DNA of 62,902 bases, the filler included, from Klebsormidium nitens (Eukaryota > Plantae > Klebsormidiophyceae), in NCBI GenBank assembly GCA_000708835.1. It is 10 parts of 10 records of this genome, joined end to end, with 100 filler letters (N's around TTAATTAATTAA, not from the genome) between each part and the next. Parts side by side here need not be neighbours in the genome. Positions count along the whole stretch, not along the records: positions 27,965 to 38,683 come from DF238146.1; 9 more parts are not named here. One strand, given 5' to 3'. The translations under genes and the position numbers were made by a program. This document shows, one piece after another, positions 27,965 through 40,060 of the stretch. Numbering within the stretch: position 1 is the first letter of the stretch; the number at the start of each line of letters is the position of its first letter. The notes beneath the pieces were generated by a model, which saw nothing but the letters and a program-made list of their open reading frames with translations, ran no database searches and had not been told where the DNA came from.

Positions 27965-28313
27965 CAAGGGTACCGTCTGTCGACGGTGACGGCTTGCCTC
28001 ATGAATGAACGTCACGCAATTGCAGAGCTGATGTGCGTGTTGTTCTATTTACTTGGAAGGAAGCGTTTGATGCACGCTCTTGTATGCATTAGGCATGCCA
28101 GAATAACCATTTCGCATCAGTGATCTTTACTTCATGGAGCGGAGAGTAACATTGTAGCGGTTCGATTGATGCTCTTCGAAAGTGAGATTGCATTGTATCA
28201 TTCATTGAAAATGTACAATCGTATGGAACCGTTCTGAGCTGCTCGTGTCACTTTATCTAGAGTCCTGGGGGACTTACGATTCTACCACAAACCTATGTAC
28301 ACTTCCTTTTAGC

Positions 28314-30927
28314 TCACTCGATCTTACATCTCTTATTGAAGAAGCCTATCTGCGGCGGCAGCTCGAGACTGATTATGTTTGCTTGGAACTGACTGAACCG
28401 CGTGTTGGGGTTCTCGCGGATGCGCATATGTATCGCGAAGCTGCGGTTCTTGAGGCGCGTGTTGAGGTTTTCCAGTTGGTCGCTCGGTGGTTTCACACAG
28501 AAGCTCTCGATGTGCGTACCGGTGACGAGGGCGAAATCGCTGGGCCATATTTTTACGGACAGACTGTCCGCTGCAAGCGAAGTCGGTGTAAGCAGAACTT
28601 CTCTTCTGTGTCAGCGAAAAGGCAAGCAGAAGTCTGTGCAGTTATATGTAAAGTGGATGCAGCAGCTGAAGTCGATTGAAGCAATGCTTGACTCAGCGAC
28701 AATCAGGTGCTTGATCAGATTTGTGTCAACCAAGCTTTTCTATTTGACGTGAACGGTAACCTGGTCGATTCAGAAGGGATCGAACGACATACAGGAAACT
28801 AGCGTACAGTTACTTACGTCCGGCGTCGATGCGGATGTCAACCGTAACGGTGACTTCCACGCACGCGTCGTCGAGCGGCCCCGCTTTGCAGCCCTGGTCG
28901 CAGAAGAGTTCCTGCGTGACAGGGTTGCGGCTGGCTGTCCCGTTGCAGTCGTAGCATCCGTACGCGATGGAGTCCACTTTCGTGAAGTTGATGAAGCTCG
29001 CCAGCACGGTCGCCGCCGTCCACCTGCTACCTGCAAGTGTCTGCACCACACGCGACCACGGCAGGATCTTGTCTTCGCTTGAGGTCTTGTACGTAAGCCC
29101 AATTCCGGCTATGCTCGCTGCCGAAGCGCCGCTGGTTGTGATGGTGGTGCTGCAGATTAGAGAGTTGGTCAGAATGAAGAATGGATGATGCTTTTCTCGA
29201 GGATCATGTTTCGAAACAAAGGTTTGTTGTTCCGACGCATATACAGCAGAGAATAAATACGTGTATGGTCACGTGATTATGGCCACGTGGCAGTGTTGAG
29301 TTTGGCTGCGTGCGCAGAAATTGCTCGCTTGTGTTTGTCTTCTTATGAATTTCGATTCGAAATGTCTTTCAAAGAGCAGATCGAACGCCGCGTACACGAC
29401 TTTAACATACTGCTCAGGTCTAATAATCGAATCCCGGCCAAAGTTCGCTGACCGCTCTTGCGTCTCCTGATTTGTTGTTCTTATTTCAGCATTGCGACTG
29501 TCAATTCTGAGAATTCAAGACGCACAAGATTTGAGTCTACAGAATGAAGCGGCACAATTGTTGACTTCACGTAAGTCGGAGCATATATTGCTTACGTTCT
29601 GGTGCTGCTGCAGCCCTGATCCGCGTCGTACTGGACGCCGGTGATGTTGATGACGTCAGCGCGGACTTTCAGCTTCTTGAGCGTCGGGAGGTGGGCCATG
29701 GTCCCCCAAATTGCGATGCTGCCCATGATACCTTGCTTGTCTTTGATGATGATTTTGCGGACGTCGCGGTCACCCTTGGAAGTAGCGGGCGTTGACACGC
29801 GACTCTTGTAGATTAAAAGGCCTTCCAGCTTATGTACCTGCGCAATATGTTTAAACATAAGACTTTGTTTTCTGTTCGACATTTTGCTGACGTCAGCAAA
29901 TCAGCAATTCTTCGGAGAAGTGTATGTGATGCTTTCGGAAAATAGCATTCCAAACTTACTCGAAGCAGATGAACGACGGAAGTCAGTTCTCTTGTTAATG
30001 CATGTAGTTCGTGAAAGTTGTAACGGAGTCACAGCATCGTATACGCAAGTTACAGACTATCTGAAGATTGCAAAGCAACCTGTAGAAGACGCTGGATGTG
30101 GATGTAGTACATGCTCGTTGCTCTTCGAGAAGAACGTGAACTCTGCCGAATTCTTCATTGCTGCCGAATTCTGCGCCGACGTACGGATGCGGAATGACAG
30201 TTAGAACTCACCCCTCCGGGCTGCAGAGAGCCGAAGCTGGCAGGGAGTTCGGCCACTGTGTCGATGTATTCAGCGGACTCGCTGATGAGAGTGCGCCCTT
30301 CTTCGATTTTGAGGGAAGTCGGGTGCTCTGTGAGGGAGAATCTGCAACAGACGAAAGGATTCTGGTAGGATGAGTGACTCAATTTCGGGCATGCAGTCGT
30401 GCATGAGTTAGCAGTAGCAACAGAACGTGTGTTACAGCAGTAGCAACAGAATGTAAAACTTCGTTGCTTTTTGATTCTTCAAACGAATTACAAACAGCCT
30501 TATGGCACTATAAAAAGCGTAGTCCGTTGAAACGGATTCAAAACTGATTCCCTGCAATATGAAACGCTATTTTCTACCGAAGAAAGTGAAATTGGAATAT
30601 CAAAGAAGCCCACCTGCATGAAGTCACGACCGGCCTGTACAAGAGAATGACGCTGCCCTTTGAGCATTGGCTGCTGACGGTTTCCACAAAGCTTCTGTCT
30701 TTGCTAGTGGCTTCCACAGTGATTCTAGCTCCCGACTTGTCTTGCAAAACCGCTTGCGTCGTGCAGAAGTGGCCGTATGGAAGCTCACGCACAGAAGGCT
30801 TGTTGCTCTCGGTGGGGCTGTCTAGCTCCACTACTTTGCCATGCACTTGAAAGAAGCTTGAGTCCACTGGAAATTCTTCTACCTGCTTGATTGAGACCGT
30901 TGGGACATCTGCCTTTTTGGGAGCCAT
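28314..30927 (-). CDS. RPA70-like ssDNA-binding protein (three OB folds, C4 zinc ribbon), Helentron-carried, 5 exons, ~424 aa
   Basis: Exons 30927-30614, 30341-30212, 29837-29596, 29149-28818, 28570-28314 join with GT-AG and consistent phases, no internal stop (1275 nt). OB-like motifs QAVLQDKSG, RKIIIKDKQG..GSIAIWG, and DBD-C-like AATV...YGCYDC...FCDQGC...VDIRIDAG...FAIHMRIRE. RPA70-like cargo is established for some Helitrons. Confidence 0.75.
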
Positions 30928-31653
30928 TGTTCCTACGAGGTGAGAGTCTCGGCATTCGTCCGTTAGAAGCGCTTTGTGTAGCGGAATCAGAGTAAGTCGG
31001 ACAAGGTAACACTGAAGTCAGGGAAAGTGTTCTTCCTGTTTGTTTGAGAACGGCGAATTGTCACATAGAAGTCTTTTAGAGTGCGCTGAAACAGACTGAA
31101 TGCGAAACATCAGATAAACAGGAAGAAGAAGTACCAGAACAGGTGTCGTGTCAAGAAGTCGATTGGAAACCGCGTTTGCTGAGCTGTTCACGTCACGCGC
31201 AAAAGTCAGACGAAGTCCTTAGAAGTCAAAGAAGACTGATAAATGCACGAACGGACCTGACGTGGCGAGTGTGTGGAAGGTGGTAGAAGATAAGACTAAG
31301 TAGAAGCGGTGGGAAGTCACATGTAGAAACAGTCGAATTTCGATGTCGCTTATGAATGCATGCGAAATCATAGAAGCCGATAATTTGCGTGGTTTGCGGA
31401 GATGCTCGCGAAGATGCATATGCAGACCCAGATCAGTCGCGCTTAAGACACCGCTGTAAAAGTACAGAAGCAAAGCGAAGTTGGAATTTCCGGCGATGTG
31501 ACGAACTATGCGTGCCCTCTCGAACGCGCGCGCGCACCGTTCTTCGCGCGCGCACTTTCAACCCAGTGCATCCATCAGGCGCGCGCGCGTCCCCGCGAAC
31601 GTATCTGAATCTGCTTGTCACCCCGAACAAATAGAAGATAAAATACTGACCGT

Positions 31654-34600
31654 TCATTGAGACTCGGACTGCCAATGGAACGCACAGTGCAGTGGACTGT
31701 GGTCGCTCCAGTAGGCTTCTAAATTTCTAGTCGTCCCTGCATTGGCTAAACCGCGCGATGCCCACACGTGATCGATGAGAGAGCCTTGATTTGTGGTCGG
31801 CAATGAGTTCAATAGTTGAATATCGAAAGAGTGCATGATCTGGACGAGCTGGTCAGCTGCTCCGGAAGGTTTAAGCAGGTCTATGTTGAAATCACCTACA
31901 CACACGAAAGGAGGCGAAGCGGTCGGCGCCCTGTGAATCAGGTTAGTAATGAATGTGCGCAAGGTCTCCAAAAAGCGATCGATTAAGAAATCGGATGGCG
32001 ACCTGTACACCGCCATCAAGTAGAAGTCGGGATTCGGGCGACCTCGTACGTGCAGACACAGTACCTGCGAATAGTAATCGGAGAAGGCCGAATGAACAGT
32101 AGCGCTTAGAGCTTGTCCGGACTTTGATATGTATACTACAACATTGTCAAAACCGTCTCGCCTAGACGGGTTGGCTTCTGCACGAAAAACGTCATAGTCA
32201 AGCTGTTCAAGTAATCGAAGATCCCACATCGGTGATGCTCGTGTTTCCGTGCAAACAATAATGTGACTACGTTTGAAGTTTAGATCGGAGAACACGTCTG
32301 ATGCGTGAAGACGCAACGAACGTACATTGTGAACGACGAGGTGTAAGTCTCGATCACTTCCGGAACTGACGGGTACCTGTGGAATGCATGGGATCACACA
32401 TGCGCGTTGCCAAAGACGGGCCATTTCTGTCAGTACTTTAGAGCTGACTGTAATTTCCTCGAAGGCGGGATCTAAGATAAACAGATGATTCAGATCAGGG
32501 AACCGACTTAATCCAACATAATGTCGACCTGCATCGACATGATGTTTCGAGGCACCCCTGAAATCAAGAGAGCCATTTCGAAGCGTCATCCCTTGTGTGT
32601 GATAAAAAGTTCCAGCTGTAGCCGGACGCAACGGAAATTGAGTTCTCAGAATTGTGCTCTCAATTCTCCGCGTAGCTTGAAACGTACGAGAAATCCGAAA
32701 TACTGGAGTCCATGCAGGGTTAATAGCAGGACACAGCTGATACAGATTAGCCCATTGTTCGCGAGTTTGGCGTCCAATTCTGTCTTCTAAGAATTCCACC
32801 CATATTACGTGAGGATCAGAAGCTCCAAGGTCATGAAAGTGCCGAACGTATCCAGTCGCTCCGTTGTACAATCCATCTGGAATATTAGTGTTGCACGTGA
32901 TTTCTATTAAAAGACCTTCTTTCAGCTGAAGAATTGCAAACAACGTTGCTGTTTCCGCATCTGGCATACGCTCAGCCTTATACAGAAAATGTTCGCGATC
33001 TCTTGTCGAAGCGCTGTAAGACAGCGCTTCATCTCTAGCACGAATCGAACATTCAGGTCCACCAGTGAGATGCAGGACCAAGCTGTTGTGTGTGTCTCTC
33101 TTCTTGCGAGTAGCAAATATGTGTTTATCGAAAGGGGAATACGCCGTAGGCAGGTGTAACGGGTCCACAACTCTCGTCTGGAACAACGCTAGATCCATTG
33201 GAGTGTGGCTGCCCGTCCGCAATCGGTTGAGTGCTTCGGCGAATTCAAGGCATTCTTTTTGCCGCATAATTTCAACAAGCTCAAACATTGAAACGTTTTC
33301 TTCCCACAGGTTACTAATTACGACGCCGTTTTTACGAATTCCTTCAAAAACGTAGCCATCCCAAAGTGGTTGAAGTTGAAAAAGGTCGCCACCGAAGATA
33401 ATCGGCAGTCCGCCAAACGGTTCAACGGATTCAAAAATCTCTTGTAAGCGATAGTTGATTATTTGTAGCAACTTGGCACCCGTCATGGACACTTCGTCAA
33501 TGACGCATCCTTTCAAATCTGCATAAGCGTCTCTCAAAGTTGCTTTCTTTTCACCTGTAATCGGAATGTACGATTCTAGCTTCGCATACAACGGAATCTT
33601 AAAGGCAGAGTGAATAGTAACGCCGTCTATGTTGAAGCCTGCACTGCCCGTAAATGCTGCCAACAGCATCTTAAGAGAGGTCGGCTGTAAGCCAACAGCT
33701 CCGCTGAATGTTCGAATTACCAATTGCGTGATGCATCGTATGACTAGACTTTTGCCAGTACCGGCCCCTCCCGTAAGAAATTCCACGAACTTTCGCGTTC
33801 CCGGAAACTTAAGAGAATGCAAAACGTGATCAACGTACGTTCTTTGCGTTGCTGTAAGCGATCGCATTTGTCCACGGAAATCTTCATCAGGTAATACGAG
33901 CTGTGAATGAGGTAATTTTTCTTCTGCAGACGACGTCGCAGAAGGCGCGAAGTCAGGCGACACTGTAAATTCGGCCGGAACGCTTGATCCCGATTCCACA
34001 TTCTGATTTTCAGCTAAATTGGCGTCTAAGGAGTCGCCGAAGATTTCGGCGTCTTCAGCTGCCCTGGCGTCTGCATATCATTCGACCTCTTCCCAAATAA
34101 TATCAGAGTGGTAGTCGTACGCCGCTGCAGCGGCTTCGATAGCTTCTTTTTCGGCTTCGTATCGCGTTTCAAAACTATCATATCCAGAAAGTAGTATGTC
34201 GTCTTCAGCAGCACTCAGAGCCATTAGACTGTTTCCAGCAAAAGACCACGGAAGGAATAGCATAATGCATTCGCGGCAGTATAATTCCGGATCTTCAGCT
34301 CTTTTGAAACTCGCATATCGTATAATTTTAGCTTTCTTACGTTGATGATACACAATAGAACCAGGAACATCGCGCTCGTCGTCTGTATCGACGGTCGCTG
34401 CTTGCATTTCGGGATCCGCTTCAGTCGCGGTATCATCGTTCACTTCTTCTTCGCTGGCTGCACTTTTCTTCGAGGGCTCAAACTAGGCAGCAAAGTCCGC
34501 TAGAGTTAGCTTTTCCGAACCCTGCATGCTTCGATTTTGTAGGCGCATAGCGTACTTGTCGACAACGTTCGAATAGACGCAGTCAGTTGAGTCTTCAGGC

Positions 34601-37600
34601 AGAAGGCGTAAAGCGCTATCAGTTTTGACCAACAGAGTTCGATTCTCGGGAATATTTGTCGGAATGAATACATGTTCCCGAGAGCTATGCCTGTACGGAA
34701 GACCCAAGCATCCGTACACTGCTTCCTGAGCTGATATTTCTTGCCCTTTTAAAAGCGCCATACCAACATACCTTATACTTCGACGGAGTTCCATGTTTCC
34801 CCGTCGAGCGTCCGCATATGCTTGATCCAAAAGTTTACTAAGACGGTAGTCTGTTTTCATCATATACGAACTGATATAGTTTGCCGCGGCGTACGCTTCC
34901 AGGACTCAAATTGTATATCCATGTTGAAACCGCCCAGCAACTTGAAGAGTTTTGGATTATAGTTGTTTATGTAAATCTCCGAAGGAGACCTCTTCAGAAA
35001 TACCGACGGTTTCACAAGTTTGTACCGTAGTCCAAGTACATATTCAGCAGGTGTCAAAGATAAGCGAGCGTAGAAGTCAGAACAAGACAGAAGCTCCAGA
35101 TCCGACTCGTTCAATTCCAATTCCCTCAAACCGTCCGATATTTTTCTTGAATACTGCGCGCATTCCTGCTTTCTGAAGTTCGAAATGCTTTCTGGTAGTG
35201 GGTGAAGTATCATCGTCTCGTGCAAAGGCGGCCGCGGGAATTCGAAACGACAAACAGGGTTACTGCCAGGAGTGCGGCGTTTCAAGCAGTAATTGCGGCT
35301 ATGTTTGTGGTACTGGCCAGTTAGATCTGACGGTGATGCTCGAGAAGACGAGCACGTGACGTGCTCATTTATGAAAGCTACGACTGTAGCATCATCGTCA
35401 ATACCGAATTTAGGAGCGTCTGCCACGTAAAAAGCGGCATGTGTGTGCGGCGTACCCCGTTGCTGGAATTCATCACGCCAAAAGAAGTCCGTAATTTGTC
35501 CTATCAAAGACGAGTATTTCTGAATAATTTGAATCAAGTGATCTCTGCGGTTACTGCAGCAACGGGCTACCGTAACCGGATCGTTTCTGATCAACAGCGC
35601 TTTCTCTAACCAAGGTAGTTGCAGAGCAGCAGCCACAGATATCGAATTCCCAGATGCCAATGTATGTAGGGTACGTAGCAAACCTCCCCATCGAGTTTCA
35701 GATACAGAAAACGTTGCAAATATCTGGAACGGGCCCAATTGTCTAATCATTGCAAACGCTTCTTTCTTTCCTTGCCGATTGTACTCAGGACTTCCGCGTA
35801 AAGTCTTAAAATCACGATATCCTATATTCTGGGACATCATAAAAGACTGAGCAGCTGGATTCCGCAGCTCACCAGCAGTAGGATATATGTTATTTGGTAA
35901 TTTCTTCTTCCGCAGTCGCACCCAAGATGCTCCTGATACAAAACGTGCCTGCAATTTGCGTAGTTTGAAGAATATATTGCTGGAATGACGTGCAAATCGT
36001 CTGTCTTCGTTCGTGAGCTCAAACTTGCATATTTTACTGTAACTTTGGCTGCTCGTAGGTCTGGCATAACCATTGAAAAGGCAGGGAAAGGCTTTTTCCT
36101 CAGCATACGGATCTTGTAGCATACCTACAGGTGTTTGACCTTCGCTTGGTGCCACACTGACGCCGAGTGAATTAGCACCGACGTAAGAAGGCACATCTTG
36201 TAACATAGTATCCTCTGGTGGCAGTTGACCGTTTTCTTCGTCCTCTGACTCTGAATCAGACGACGAAGAAACAGCTGGTTGTTCACTTTCAAAAAGATCA
36301 CTTTCAAGACCAAGTGGGTTCGCAACCAACGGAGAATCAGAGAAGTCTGTTCGAACAGACGCGTCAATACTCGCGAGCCAGTCAGAACGAATTTCCACAT
36401 TCGCCTCACTCCATAGAGTCGGCTGTTTCACCAAGAAAAATAACGCATCACGAATTTTTGACGGGCGAACATTCTCTGCTGCCCGGTAACAAGCTTTAGT
36501 TTTCTGCTTATATTTTATTGCCACAGGTATTGTGCCTTCCGAATCTACAAGTCTCGGAAGAGCGAGCTGAATTCTGTTCAGATCAACAACAACATTGACG
36601 ACCATTCCTTTCAAAGCTAATTGGCCAAATTTACAAGGACCACCTGCCGCCAACGGCGGCAGACCGCGCAATTTCATAAATGCTAAACGCATAGCAATCA
36701 GATCGTTCTCCATACTTGTCAAGCCCTGCAGCGCAGGGTCGAGAACCGCAAAATCCGGCTGCTTAGGTGGCGCACCAGGCGGACACCTTCGTTTTGCAGC
36801 ATACTTGTAGCACGTTGAGCAAATCCACTCTTCATTATCAACAGACTTACGTCCAGTAAACCAAGCAGACACTTCAGCAGAAGTAAGCCGCTCTCTCAGT
36901 TTATCACTCACCACTCGCATGCTCCGTGAAAACCAAGTACGACGACAGCACGTGCAAACATACACAGGTCCCTCATCACTCGCTTGACGAAATTCACGAA
37001 CAATGTCGTCGAAAGGTTCTGAGATGCTGTCATCTACCGAACAACTATTGTCCGGCATCATTTCCGAGATAATGCGTTGTAAGCGTTTCTCCACCTCAAA
37101 ACGCAACTCTAAGCGTTCAGATACAGGGAAATTAAGATTGTGATGCCCAGGTGCTCGTCTTGCAACAAAATCGTACACTGAAGCAGCTTCTGTTTCAGTT
37201 TCATATTGGCCAAGCTGGTGAATGCAATTTCCTATTGATATCCGAGCACGATATTTCGTGTAACCAAAACATTGGTTTTCAATAACTCCAGAAGGGAGCT
37301 TACGGTTTGAAAGGACAGCAGGCTCATCAACCTGAGGTCTTCTCTGACGTCGTATCATCTTACCTCTAATCGACGTCAAACATTGTTCAGCGTACGCCCG
37401 CTCCGCTACATCCATGCCCACCCCGTCAGGAAAGTTGAGCGGTCTCGGAGTCGCGCCTTCCGCCACAAGAGCCCCGACCACGTAGTCATAAGCCTTCGCA
37501 GCCCGCTCTTCAGAGTCGAATTCGCCGTAATGGTACTGCTTGCTGCCAAAAGCGCACCTGATCTCAAACGGATGCTGCAAGCGCTTTGTTCTAGCGATAC

Positions 37601-38090
37601 CCCGATACCGTCCTGAATGCTCAGAGAATTTGTGCTTGCAATTCCCACAGACTTGTGCTTGATTGAACGATCTCTGCGTGCAAGATGGGCACTCCTTCAA
37701 ACGCTTCTTTCCGCTACCTCCGCAAGCTCGACAACTAACAGCATCTACAAGAACCTTATTTGTACAGTGCATTTTCCAGGGGCACAGAATCATAGCCAGC
37801 TTTCCCGACATCTGGTCCCCAGAGAATGCATTTCCGTAAGCTTCTTCATCTGTACAACTTTCTACAATCACCACGTATGTCATCTCACACGCCTGTACAC
37901 CACGTATTACAGTTCGCTCTAGAGAAGGCGGCGTCGTTACTTCAAGAGAGAACCCGGCTTCTTCCCCTTCCCAACTAACGATTCTGCCTGCACAAGCTGG
38001 AAAGCGCCCATCAAGCGAAGCTGCGCAAACACTATCGTCTAACAAGACTTGCGGCCCATACCTATCAACATCATCAGCAGGCGAAGCCAT
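31654..38090 (-). pseudogene. Helentron Rep-helicase-endonuclease polyprotein (Zn ribbon, 2x AP2, Zn finger/DUF6570-like, HUH Rep, PIF1 helicase, APE-type endonuclease), disrupted
   Basis: ORFs 38168-34860, 34863-34483, 34443-34078 and 33999-31654 are one reading frame broken by a frameshift near 34905 (NMDIQF then VLEAYAAANYISSYMMK in the shifted frame), TAG at 34483-34485 and TGA at 34078-34080. Motifs: WRDEFQQRGTPHTHA (HUH), YINNYNP...NMDIQF, Y..Y...Y..K, GGAGTGKS (Walker A), IDEVSM, GGDLFQLQP, QFPLRPATAGTFYHTQG, HNVRSL...TETR...GDFNID...IDH...SDH (EEP/APE). Probable start ATG at 38090. Confidence 0.9.
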
Positions 38091-40060
38091 TGTCCAAAAT
38101 ACGCTCAGGCAATCGGAAACTAAGCAGGTCGCATCGCAGCAAGAAAGAAGACAGCGAACCGGCTGCAACCAGTCAACGCAGCTTGCACAAAGCTCGTGAA
38201 CGAAGCACCACCAGATGGCACAGCACTTGACAGAGGATAGAAATAAGCGCTTCGCTCAAGGCCAAGAAAGAGATTAAGCCGCATACCAAGCCATGCATCG
38301 TCACGACGAACGAATCGTCGAAGTACGTACCATCAATAATAAGAAGAAACCTCGTATACTCGCGAGGTACGCACCGTCGCAAAGTGGCATGCACAACATG
38401 CATGCAACAGAGCACCATCGCTGACTAGTACGGTACCAAATCACGCTGACTTCTGAACTCGAAGTCAGATCACTCGGATTGTTCGATTCGAAAACCAGAA
38501 TCCGCGCCGCAATGCACAACCCAGTCGAAGGGGGGGTAGCGCCATTATAAAGACAGGATCCTATGTCGTACTGTACGTTTTATCGTCGAACCCGGCCAAC
38601 GCGAGCAGGTCGAAACCCCGAGCGCGCGCTGCCCCGCATACAGCGCCGATTGAACCCATATCGATGGTTGCCCACTTCCCGAANNNNNNNNNNNNNNNNN
38701 NNNNNNNNNNNNNNNNNNNNNNNNNNNTTAATTAATTAANNNNNNNNNNNNNNNNNNNNNNNNNNNNNNNNNNNNNNNNNNNNGCGATGATGTCATGTTA
38801 AGACCATGCTGTGTCTGTGAAGAAAAGGCCGGATGCGTGTGCATGATTGCTAAAAAACCTCTGATTCGGGCTCTAGGACCGACCATACTTGACGAAGTAA
38901 AAGGACGACCAGGCTTGAGGCAGCAAGGCTGTCAGAAAGCCAACCGCATCGATCTGGTTACTCAGAGAGATTCGGCCCAAAAGAATCAAATTACAAGTTT
39001 CCGCGCACCTATCCATTCTCAAGGGTCACTTCGTTACTGCCCAGAATAGATGATGTCCGGCAAAAGCTCGTCGACATGCCCGACCTTCCCCGTTATCCGG
39101 TCGCACCGAATGAAATTTTTAGAGAGTGATCCGGCATCCGACCGTGCGCATCCTCAGACTTGTGGCGTGCTTGGGGGTCGCCACGCTTCATTCACGCTTC
39201 ACTGCCGGATCCCCTATTCCTCTCCGCTGACTCTGCTGATACGAATCGACTTTAAGAAAATTAATCATGGCGTATCATAACACCTGCCAATTGCTATCAA
39301 ATCCAGTCGCAAAGTCTTTTAAAATGAAATAGCCGCTACAGAGATTGGCATCAAGAGATTCAGATCTTACTAACGGACGGGGCCCGTATGGACCTTCGCT
39401 CGGAACAGGTAGGAGCTAGGAAACGAAAGTCTTTGATCACACGGGATGCAATCGAAAAACTTTTGGGATGGAAGCTGGTGTAGTTGAATGTCAAGGCTCC
39501 TCAGTAAGGCCGCTCTAGTTGCGAGGTTGTAGCACAATGACGTCGTCGTCATGATGCACGTAAATCTACAAGTATCCGACTTCGAGGGCCCATTTAAAAC
39601 TACACGTACTAGCGCAAACTGCAGCCAATTCAGGGAAATGGGTGGCATTGGAGAGACGGTAAGGGCCTGAGCAAGCGGGCTTCAAAAATGTGGCATAATA
39701 TAAGAGCGTGAGAGTCGCAAGGGCCAAGTAAGCAGCTGCCCACCAAGCTGATCGTCACGGCCACGGCGGAAAAAATCTTCGGGGAAGGAACTCAAATACG
39801 GATTTGGGTTTTGGAGGCGGCTCGCAACAGAGAGACAGCCCACGGACACTTTTGCCCGTCGAGTATTCTATCCATTCTCGTACGTGTTCAAACCGCGCTT
39901 CTAAACGTTGGGGCCAAAACGAAGAATGCCTGCACCGTTTCATCATTGATGTTCGCGGTTCATTGATTGAGGTAGTCAGAATCGCGACCAGCAGAAGGCT
40001 CCGCCAACTGAGGTTTGAAAGCTTTGCAAAACGTATCGCCGACTTTACCAAGGCAAGATT

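Follow-up and report, generated by a model that had tools for sequence, protein, structure and literature searches.

A transposon gene of Klebsormidium nitens appears to carry, ahead of its rolling-circle Rep nuclease, two domains resembling the AP2 domain of plant transcription factors, which raises the question of whether these domains are genuine, whether they belong to the transposon and what they might do there. Helitron-like transposases are thought to locate their ends via a zinc-finger-like N-terminus that is poorly understood. The window, by which we mean the whole 62,902-nucleotide stretch of DNA that was analysed (ten joined parts of assembly GCA_000708835.1, filler included), contains the gene in the part taken from DF238146.1 (positions 27,965 to 38,683). 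The reading favoured here is that of a decayed Helentron with an inherited AP2 extension through which the element's ends would be recognised, a complete statement to which we assign a probability of roughly 0.55.

Helentrons were reportedly dealt with by Poulter in 2003. They correspond to HLE2, the endonuclease-encoding rolling-circle transposons (Thomas et al. 2014, PMC4067079; HELIANO, PMC11417382). The element in the window is a Helentron in this sense, because the ORF that carries the AP2 domains and Rep is followed by one that combines a PIF1 helicase with an AP endonuclease. The element spans 29250..38683, as delineated from its gene content, its end motifs and a downstream gene in common with a related element (L005), with its 5' part cut at the edge of the piece and its 3' boundary inferred somewhere near 29350-29250. 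The AP2-Helentron gene sits on the minus strand, which corrects the first account of the locus; all features given below lie on that strand.

The two peptides that the sequence-only reading had quoted do share one stop-free frame with the Helitron zinc finger and the HUH Rep. This frame, ORF A (34860..38168), comprises 1102 stop-free codons with a likely start codon, M27, at 38090. Downstream of the AP2 region it encodes the Helitron N-terminal zinc-finger-like motif CTCC...CSTC (36804..36965, aa 405-453), a DUF6570 domain (36375..36755, aa 472-598; Pfam E 6e-8) and the Rep nuclease, Helitron_like_N (35439..36026, aa 715-910; Pfam E 3e-17), in which the HUH motif H-T-H lies at 35447..35439 (aa 908-910). 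The tyrosine motif of Rep, YISSYMMK (34855..34878), lies just downstream of Rep and is put out of frame of ORF A in the copy at hand by a frameshift near 34900-34915. ORF B (31654..33999) encodes the PIF1 helicase (33858..33214; Pfam E 6e-26) and, fused at its C-terminal side in the same ORF, the AP endonuclease (32265..31690; Exo_endo_phos_2 E 5e-10, Exo_endo_phos E 2e-5), an arrangement also found in L004 and L005. In addition to the frameshift, two in-frame stops are present, a TAG at ~34483 and a TGA at ~34078. The copy is thus decayed and cannot yield an active protein, and of the earlier description as a Rep-helicase-endonuclease protein, the assignment of the AP2 domains to a Helentron gene stands while the intactness of that protein does not. 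In a contig from organism B, two 1-nt deletions (34907 and 34911) bring the frames back into register. Synonymous and non-synonymous differences between the copy at hand and the organism B contigs number 9 and 14, respectively, a ratio that is uninformative for decaying copies.

Further downstream lies an accessory gene (29592..30927) with GT-AG introns and a tblastx match to positions 7626-7787 of L005 (E 7e-12). Pfam and PDB sequence searches with the downstream ORFs were negative. Atlas features match POT1, OB_Ssb-like and RPA at 0.91-0.94 and, together with the conservation in L005, they indicate that the product is probably an OB-fold single-strand DNA-binding protein.

The identity of the two N-terminal segments, AP2-1 (37428..37616, aa 185-247) and AP2-2 (37125..37304, aa ~289-348, with the peptide YTKYRARIS beginning at 37262), is not evident from Pfam. 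The AP2 profile (PF00847) gave 16 bits and E 0.016 for AP2-1, against a cut-off of 33.3, and had no match to AP2-2 or to the whole ORF. Taken by itself, this lack of a significant match formally refutes the claim of two tandem AP2-like domains, but it was not accepted as a refutation, given the positive outcome of the stronger tests, namely exhaustive phmmer, profile searches and fold comparison. A phmmer search with aa 120-400 against 1.84 billion proteins returned 428 matches at E<=1e-3, among them a nine-AP2 Cymbomonas protein at E 1e-33 and another multi-AP2 protein at 9e-28. The best non-transposon matches are multi-AP2 proteins in which Pfam recognises 3-9 AP2 domains at E 1e-23 to 1e-76, and among the closest AP2 relatives are a prasinophyte and diatom-rich clusters. 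Against the PDB, phmmer retrieved WRI1 (E 1.5e-5) and ERF096, and a profile built from eight family members retrieved WRI1 over both repeats at E 6.4e-9, as well as ERF096, ERF1 and TEM1. Word-index protein searches with the AP2 region and the family alignment gave nothing, or already known members alone; few members of the AP2-Helentron family occur in the protein collection searched.

The predicted structure agrees with these matches. An AlphaFold model of the AP2 pair (pLDDT 86.9) contains the strand-strand-strand-helix unit twice; Foldseek ranks 1-8 against the PDB are all AP2 structures, with 7wq5 the best, and 1gcc superposes on the model with an rmsd of 2.2 A over 64 columns (TM 0.76, Foldseek). 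The AP2 signature consists of the motifs YRGV, WxAxI, LGxF..EAAxAYD and LNFP. Of these, YRGI, LNFP, G/AA/YD and NFP are retained in both repeats, with a degenerate first strand in repeat 2 (SGV), and in place of the strand-2 Trp, repeat 1 has Phe (PFEIRC) and repeat 2 has Tyr (YRARI). Both segments are therefore genuine AP2-fold domains despite their sub-threshold Pfam scores, as phmmer, the family profile and the AlphaFold and Foldseek results concur, and the original claim of a tandem pair is upheld.

Three further modules accompany the pair. An SH3-like beta-barrel domain (37866..38090, aa 27-101; AlphaFold pLDDT 80-92) is conserved across the AP2-Helentron family, with phmmer matches in five proteins (P0001, P0005, P0007, P0157 and P0170); it resembles KOW, Tudor and PWWP barrels at a VIA Z of ~7, which shows a generic fold and nothing finer. 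A zinc-ribbon insertion (37617..37811, aa 120-184; Pfam DZR E 0.004) is confined to the lineage of the copy at hand: it is 45% identical to the N-terminus of P0009, and the other family members are devoid of it. Between the two AP2 domains, the AlphaFold model (residues 80-102) and the alignments place a helix (37341..37409, aa 254-276) that bears the family motif E-E-R-A-Y-A-x-x-C-L.

The AP2 module is not restricted to this copy, since six more contigs, drawn from four other datasets, also bear it. At five loci (L001, L004, L005, L006 and L007) tblastn aligned AP2 and Rep colinearly in one frame at 37-48% identity, the alignments running from aa 27/201/207 through aa 905/1087. The fusion therefore recurs at other loci and, as the sequence-only reading had suspected, represents a family rather than a single accident. 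One member, P0157, is a continuous ORF of 1271 aa that includes the barrel, the two AP2 domains, DUF6570 and Rep. In a Rep tree, whose AP2-bearing members are limited to the three elements with full Rep cores, these three cluster (SH-aLRT 92) and are sister to an element devoid of AP2; together with that sister they are split, at a value of 100, from the Helentrons of animals, in which the AP2 module is lacking. The family shares derived traits, namely the change of the strand-2 Trp to Tyr/Phe and the linker motif EExAYAxxCL. Moreover, the AP2-Rep junction is covered unbroken by contigs of several public runs (Logan contigs). A joint (35947>37363) occurred in one 57-nt contig only and was disregarded. 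With regard to metagenomes, a scan with the family peptide patterns gave 71 matches, none of them related, and the conserved 19-mer GTTCGACGRTAAAACGTAC was found at six loci by chance, with 19-20 nt shared and no Helentron protein. Within a small Helentron lineage the extension is stably inherited, being neither a one-off capture nor an assembly artefact, and AP2 identity and family membership can together be regarded as highly probable.

The extension thus consists of the SH3-like barrel followed by the two AP2-fold domains linked by the conserved helix, and it precedes the part that Helitrons usually have, from the zinc-finger-like motif through DUF6570 to the HUH Rep. As for what the extension does, the AP2 pair could serve as a sequence-specific reader of duplex DNA and so guide the Rep nuclease to particular sites, and the likeliest such sites would be the element's own terminal regions, with their shared, ordered short motifs. 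In this manner, the binding of duplex DNA by AP2 would supplement the binding of single-stranded DNA by the standard Helitron N-terminal domain. Helraiser requires its N-terminus in order to bind and cleave DNA, and it cannot dispense with its left terminal sequence (LTS; PMC4778049). The suggestion that AP2 is used for end or target recognition is reasonable; it agrees with the N-terminus being the DNA-binding part of a Helitron transposase (PMC4778049) and with the repetition of motifs at both ends of the element. Since the Helitron Rep works on single-stranded DNA and AP2 on duplex DNA, an end-recognition role is not obligatory. Considered on its own, the end-recognition mechanism would fall slightly short of an even chance.

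The motifs in question lie in two blocks. The 5' non-coding block (38482..38643) contains CTGTATGCGG, TTCGACCTGCTC, GTTCGACGATAAAACGTAC and TTCGAATCGAA and is conserved among related elements; its identity to L002 is 71% over 144 nt, further matches are found in L003 and L004, and in the comparison of the window with these three it is better conserved than the coding sequence. The 3' block (29351..29397) repeats the motifs of the 5' block in the same order and orientation, as GTGTACGCGG, TTCGATCTGCTC and TTCGAATCGAA. TTCGAYCTGCTC occurs solely at 38614..38603 and 29385..29374 and TTCGAATCGAA solely at 38492..38482 and 29361..29351, with chance expectations of 0.17 and 0.27, respectively, values that are optimistic in that the motifs were chosen after inspection of the sequence. 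Both pairs are colinear and have an identical orientation at the two ends, which are putative ends, the 5' terminus being cut off and the 3' terminus inferred. The near-palindrome TTCGA-A-TCGAA is found close to either end, and the 3' block is followed by a 5-bp stem (29317..29306). Helentron termini typically have palindromic sub-terminal inverted repeats and a palindrome at the 3' end, and Helentrons insert at TT. A search of the piece for terminal or sub-terminal inverted repeats returned chance-level pairs only, and the palindromic Helentron type was not found. TTCGAC was rejected as an over-represented hexamer (11 found, 8.3 expected), end-specificity being confined to the longer motifs. 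The TTCGAYCTGCT motif is absent from the L004/L005 subclade, which could reflect co-variation of protein and site, or the irrelevance of the motif.

Instead of the element's own ends, the AP2 pair might recognise a host motif, for instance of the promoter type, and thereby select the target or tether the protein to chromatin, steering the site of integration; the SH3/Tudor-like barrel could possibly read chromatin in such a scheme. AP2 domains typically recognise short promoter motifs in duplex DNA, as in the PDB structures matched here (1gcc and 7wq5), and many transposases use additional DNA-binding or chromatin-binding domains for targeting. The position of a family-conserved barrel of the Tudor/PWWP/KOW type ahead of the AP2 pair fits the same picture. 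However, the matches of this barrel are generic, one copy only has been seen, with its ends cut or undefined, and selection of host sites does not account for the recurrence of the motif set at the two ends of the element. A role in targeting is accordingly rather unlikely, though to be taken seriously.

The AP2 pair could also be a captured fragment of a host transcription factor, carried as a passenger or acting solely as a regulator, whether of the element's own promoter or of genes of the host, with no part in transposition. Helitron-like elements often capture host pieces, among them transcription-factor domains such as B3 (PMC11417382), and host-type multi-AP2 proteins are the closest to this module in sequence. 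Such pieces decay fast and are seldom fused into the transposase frame, whereas this module is found in frame and at the same position in proteins that are only 26-48% identical, across five datasets, and preserves its fold-determining residues in both repeats; a capture devoid of function in transposition is thus improbable.

With regard to the origin of the module, the deep nodes of the tree of double-AP2 modules are unresolved, so that capture and donation cannot be distinguished from it. Each of the two Helentron subclades has good support, but the two are not joined; they may nevertheless have a single origin, with which the tree is compatible. The suggestion in the sequence-only reading that such elements dispersed double-AP2 modules in early green plants is unsupported. 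Transfer in the opposite direction, from transposon to host, would have this lineage or its ancestors ferrying the tandem AP2 domains and their helical linker among distant eukaryotes, with domestication seeding some double- or multi-AP2 factors of algae and protists and, conceivably, the plant AP2/ANT/WRI-type lineage, a scenario that we consider a long shot. Lastly, a chance similarity, or a neighbouring host gene joined by mis-assembly or read-through, would accord with the sub-threshold and silent Pfam profile and the empty word-index searches, but is already refuted by the exhaustive match to bona fide AP2 proteins, by the agreement in profile and fold with AP2 structures that have been solved, by the unbroken public-run contigs across the junction and by the identical architecture in independent assemblies.

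A decayed Helentron with an AP2 extension that may recognise its ends therefore remains the preferred reading. Two added, well-understood readers of duplex DNA provide a tractable handle on end or target recognition in rolling-circle transposition, because AP2 specificity is easily measured.

When compared with known systems, the element resembles other Helentrons in combining, in the same order, an HUH Rep that bears a two-tyrosine motif, DUF6570, a PIF1 helicase and a C-terminal AP endonuclease, and in possessing an accessory OB-fold gene, here predicted. By Rep, its closest named relatives are of the Helentron type and come from bivalves, corals, echinoderms and fish; unlike the element in the window, these relatives are devoid of the SH3-like barrel and two-AP2 extension. 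It also differs in that direct, colinear motif sets are present at its two ends, with no palindromic sub-terminal inverted repeats identified. The text of HELIANO, the largest domain survey, names ~20 extra domains without AP2 among them (PMC11417382), and the extra domains in the texts of the surveys consulted include RPA, OTU, EN, B3, STPR, Ssb-like_OB, 2OG-FeII oxygenase and UCH, among others (PMC11417382). The literature searched likewise holds no mention of AP2 in a Helitron transposase, and the fusion, which the sequence-only reading had proposed to be undescribed, has apparently not been described before. Since the AP2 domains score below the Pfam threshold, surveys of transposon domains that apply Pfam cut-offs will miss them. 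Helraiser shares the DNA-binding function of the N-terminus, required there for end binding and cleavage (PMC4778049), and the zinc-finger-like motif is found here too; by contrast, Helraiser has neither AP2 nor an endonuclease, and its N-terminus has been shown to bind single-stranded end oligonucleotides (PMC4778049).

The plant double-AP2 factors (AP2/ANT/WRI1) have in common with the Helentron module a tandem AP2 pair joined by a helical linker. The HMMER alignment of the family profile to WRI1 covers both repeats and the linker as a single alignment, in which '..CLaqlrG..' of the family is paired with '..YLASLRR..' of WRI1, with a longer, gapped linker, and 7wq5, the top fold match, belongs to these factors. 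The module of the Helentrons differs in its longer linker (~41 aa from LNFP to the first strand of repeat 2) with a motif of its own, in the replacement of the strand-2 Trp by Phe/Tyr and in its fusion to a transposase; furthermore, the relative orientation of the domains in the model fails to superpose on 7wq5 (rmsd 17 A).

AP2-fold domains are also known from other mobile elements. Magnani et al. reportedly treated the HNH-AP2 homing endonucleases in 2004, and Balaji et al. are said to have treated AP2-integrase domains and the arm-binding domain of lambda integrase in 2005. The AP2-fold domain of lambda integrase binds repeated arm-type sites within the element. In these systems, too, an AP2-fold domain lies on the N-terminal side of a mobile-element enzyme that cleaves or joins DNA. 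Here, two AP2 domains are present, in a eukaryotic host, and their catalytic partner is an HUH rolling-circle Rep with a helicase and an AP endonuclease, where the other systems have an HNH nuclease or a tyrosine recombinase; the sequence neighbours are eukaryotic multi-AP2 proteins and not phage or bacterial ones. A eukaryotic rolling-circle transposon thereby joins the short list of AP2-bearing mobile elements, which underlie the long-standing idea that AP2 transcription factors derived from mobile elements.

A single large gene system occupies the minus strand of the piece at 27965-38683. ORF A (38168..34860, 1102 codons without a stop, with a likely start at M27, position 38090) carries DUF6570 (aa 472-598, Pfam E 6e-8), Helitron_like_N (aa 715-910, E 3e-17) and the HUH motif, H-T-H, at aa 908-910. 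ORF B (33999..31654, minus strand, 781 aa) matches PIF1 (Pfam E 6e-26) and ends in an endonuclease (Exo_endo_phos_2, E 5e-10; Exo_endo_phos, E 2e-5). Rep followed by a PIF1 helicase and an AP endonuclease is the layout of a Helentron (HLE2). Directly after the endonuclease stop codon lies a stretch of alternating GC (gcgcgcgcgc three times, 31600..31525, minus strand). The copy in the window is decayed and inactivated, given three minus-strand lesions between ORF A and ORF B: in-frame stop codons at ~34483 (TAG) and ~34078 (TGA), and a frameshift near 34900-34915, between the HUH and tyrosine motifs, past which the Rep tyrosine motif YISSYMMK (from 34878) is no longer in frame. A contig of a second organism, B, lacks one base at 34907 and another at 34911, which brings the frames of ORF A and the tyrosine motif back into register.

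The sequence-only reading had placed two tandem AP2 domains in the Rep frame, and this was borne out, both of its quoted peptides lying inside ORF A: AP2-1 covers aa 185-247 (37616..37428, minus strand) and AP2-2 aa ~289-348 (37304..37125, minus strand). The Pfam check that it proposed held for Helitron_like_N, PIF1 and Exo_endo_phos, all of which matched, and failed for AP2, which stayed below threshold. AP2 was absent from the scan of the whole ORF A, the isolated AP2-1 reached 16 bits (E 0.016; cut-off 33.3) and the isolated AP2-2 had no match to Pfam AP2. Pfam by itself would have discarded these segments; three stronger tests concur on AP2. A phmmer search with aa 120-400 against 1.84 billion proteins returned 428 matches at E<=1e-3, 34 of them at E<=1e-10. 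The top non-transposon match is a protein of Cymbomonas tetramitiformis (E 1e-33, followed by 9e-28 and 4.5e-23), the best of these matches hold 3-9 Pfam AP2 domains each (E 1e-23 to 1e-76), and the alignments are mostly colinear across both repeats. Among PDB sequences, the segment matched WRI1 (E 1.5e-5) and ERF096 (E 1.6e-3), and an eight-member family profile matched WRI1 at E 6.4e-9, in a single alignment over both repeats and the linker, as well as ERF096, ERF1 and TEM1. For aa 175-360, AlphaFold, given an alignment of 68 sequences, produced a model with a mean pLDDT of 86.9 that shows strand-strand-strand-helix, a long helix, and strand-strand-strand-helix again. The best eight PDB structures found with it by Foldseek are all AP2 structures (7wq5, E 3e-6), and 1gcc fits with an rmsd of 2.2 A and a TM of 0.76. 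Chance likeness or artefact as the source of the AP2 segments is excluded.

Relatives sharing this N-terminus were gathered by the same phmmer query and by a Rep-based search. From Logan run SRR23617307 come P0157 (1271 aa, locus L005), P0090 with P0158 (371 and 1714 aa, L004) and P0001 (378 aa, L002); the others are P0007 (488 aa, Logan SRR23617210, L003), P0170 (710 aa, Logan), P0005 (827 aa, ENA ERZ26273096, L001) and P0181 (651 aa, JGI metagenomes 3300060284/5, L006 and L007). By tblastn of ORF A, the AP2 region runs to the end of Rep in one frame in L001, L004, L005, L006 and L007, with 37-48% identity across ~900 residues. The fusion extends beyond a single copy and marks a family rather than an accident. 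From the N-terminus on, its members share an SH3-like barrel, a variable linker, AP2-1, a conserved helix (EExAYAxxCL), AP2-2, a zinc-finger-like motif, DUF6570 and Rep. Both Helentron subclades share derived traits, namely the strand-2 tryptophan replaced by Tyr/Phe and the linker motif EExAYAxxCL. In a Rep-core tree, restricted to those AP2-bearing elements with complete cores, the window copy, P0157 and P0158 cluster (SH-aLRT 92), with P0159, a protein with a short N-terminus and no AP2, as their sister. Support of 100 separates this assemblage from the 41 proteins of animal Helentrons, none of which (0/41) has the AP2 module.

Over the AP2 region, contigs from public runs of both the source organism and organism B match the window at 95-100% identity. 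In two source-organism runs, contigs of ~1 kb match only the 50 nt at 37472..37423, the end of AP2-1, with 7 mismatches, and then diverge; in the letters flanking this match, a helix of AP2 type ('...YDYV...') is still encoded, which suggests that the genome has another, diverged family of AP2-bearing sequences. L004 (367-1482, 1729-6873) and L005 (178-3993, 4287-6692) are diverged sister elements from the one run SRR23617307. Each consists of two called genes, broken between AP2 and DUF6570 in L004 and between Rep and helicase in L005, and since the calls split at differing places, these relatives are probably either partly decayed too or short-introned.

The SH3-like beta-barrel (aa 27-101; 38090..37866, minus strand; five strands, AlphaFold pLDDT 80-92) precedes the AP2 pair in every family member with a complete N-terminus, and its fold matches are generic only (KOW, Tudor, PWWP; Z about 7). 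A zinc-ribbon insertion (aa 120-184; 37811..37617, minus strand) occurs only in the lineage of the window copy. It shares 45% identity with the N-terminal part of P0009, an unrelated 405-aa metagenomic protein with Pfam DZR, and looks like a second, later domain acquisition. Downstream, on the strand of ORF A and ORF B, lies an accessory gene with GT-AG introns (30927..~29592, minus strand), which show the host to be a eukaryote. The first exon has a counterpart of 48% identity in an ORF lying at the L005 end (tblastx E 7e-12). Neither Pfam nor the PDB yielded a sequence match for this gene, and its neighbours in the Atlas, a protein-language-model resource, are OB-fold ssDNA binders (POT1, OB_Ssb-like, RPA; 0.91-0.94). 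Accessory genes of such a kind are already known in Helentrons.

The region 5' of ORF A (38683..38480) is better conserved than the coding sequence, at 71% identity over 144 nt between the window and L002 as against 65-68%, and parts of it reappear in L003 and L004, notably GTTCGACGATAAAACGTAC. Three 5' motifs are repeated ~9.2 kb downstream, in the same order and orientation, just beyond the accessory gene. These minus-strand motifs are CTGTAYGCGG (5' 38643; 3' 29397, one mismatch), TTCGAYCTGCTC (38614..38603; 29385..29374) and TTCGAATCGAA (38492..38482; 29361..29351), with chance expectations of 1.04, 0.17 and 0.27, values that are optimistic as the motifs were picked after inspection. TTCGAYCTGCTC and TTCGAATCGAA have no further occurrences in the piece. 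L002 and L003 have TTYGAYCTGCT in the corresponding position too, and the L004/L005 subclade lacks it. The piece edge truncates the element at its 5' terminus, and the blocks lie near its two ends, of which the 3' one is putative. Classic Helentron sub-terminal inverted repeats were searched for in the piece and not found. Past the 3' block are a 5-bp stem, CTGCG-CA-CGCAG (29317..29306, minus strand), and two palindromes with a CACGTG core, CCACGTGG (29290..29283) and TCACGTGA (29276..29269, both minus strand); together they may form a 3'-end structure or be unrelated flanking sequence.

The evidence shows two AP2-fold domains in conserved fusion with a Helentron transposase. The AP2 pair would bind duplex DNA sequence-specifically and so place the enzyme. 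The favoured reading, with a probability of roughly 45%, is that the pair recognises the end regions of the element itself. The main rival, a tether to target sites or chromatin, is less likely. A captured passenger without function is unlikely, as AP2 is kept in frame despite 26-48% identity.

As to origin, a prasinophyte supplies the best AP2 relative, and the Atlas neighbours are mostly from diatoms. The tree of the double-AP2 module is without resolution and does not tell hosts as its source from hosts as its recipients, the latter being the vehicle for green-plant modules that had been proposed. The family-profile alignment through the WRI1 linker could serve as a lead on evolutionary origin, not as a test. 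Overall, the observation in the sequence-only reading is confirmed and its interpretation partly supported, namely for the conserved AP2-Helentron fusion.

AP2 domains are found in other mobile-element enzymes, such as HNH-AP2 homing endonucleases and the arm-binding domains of integrases. Among the papers searched, those containing both 'Helitron' and 'AP2 domain' do not, by their titles and abstracts, concern a transposase, and the main text of the HELIANO study does not name AP2 among the extra domains (PMC11417382). Good descriptions exist of Helentrons and of their accessory domains, among them RPA, OTU and EN (PMC4067079, PMC11417382), and the 20 extra domains reported by HELIANO as stably included count among them a plant transcription-factor domain, B3 (PMC11417382).
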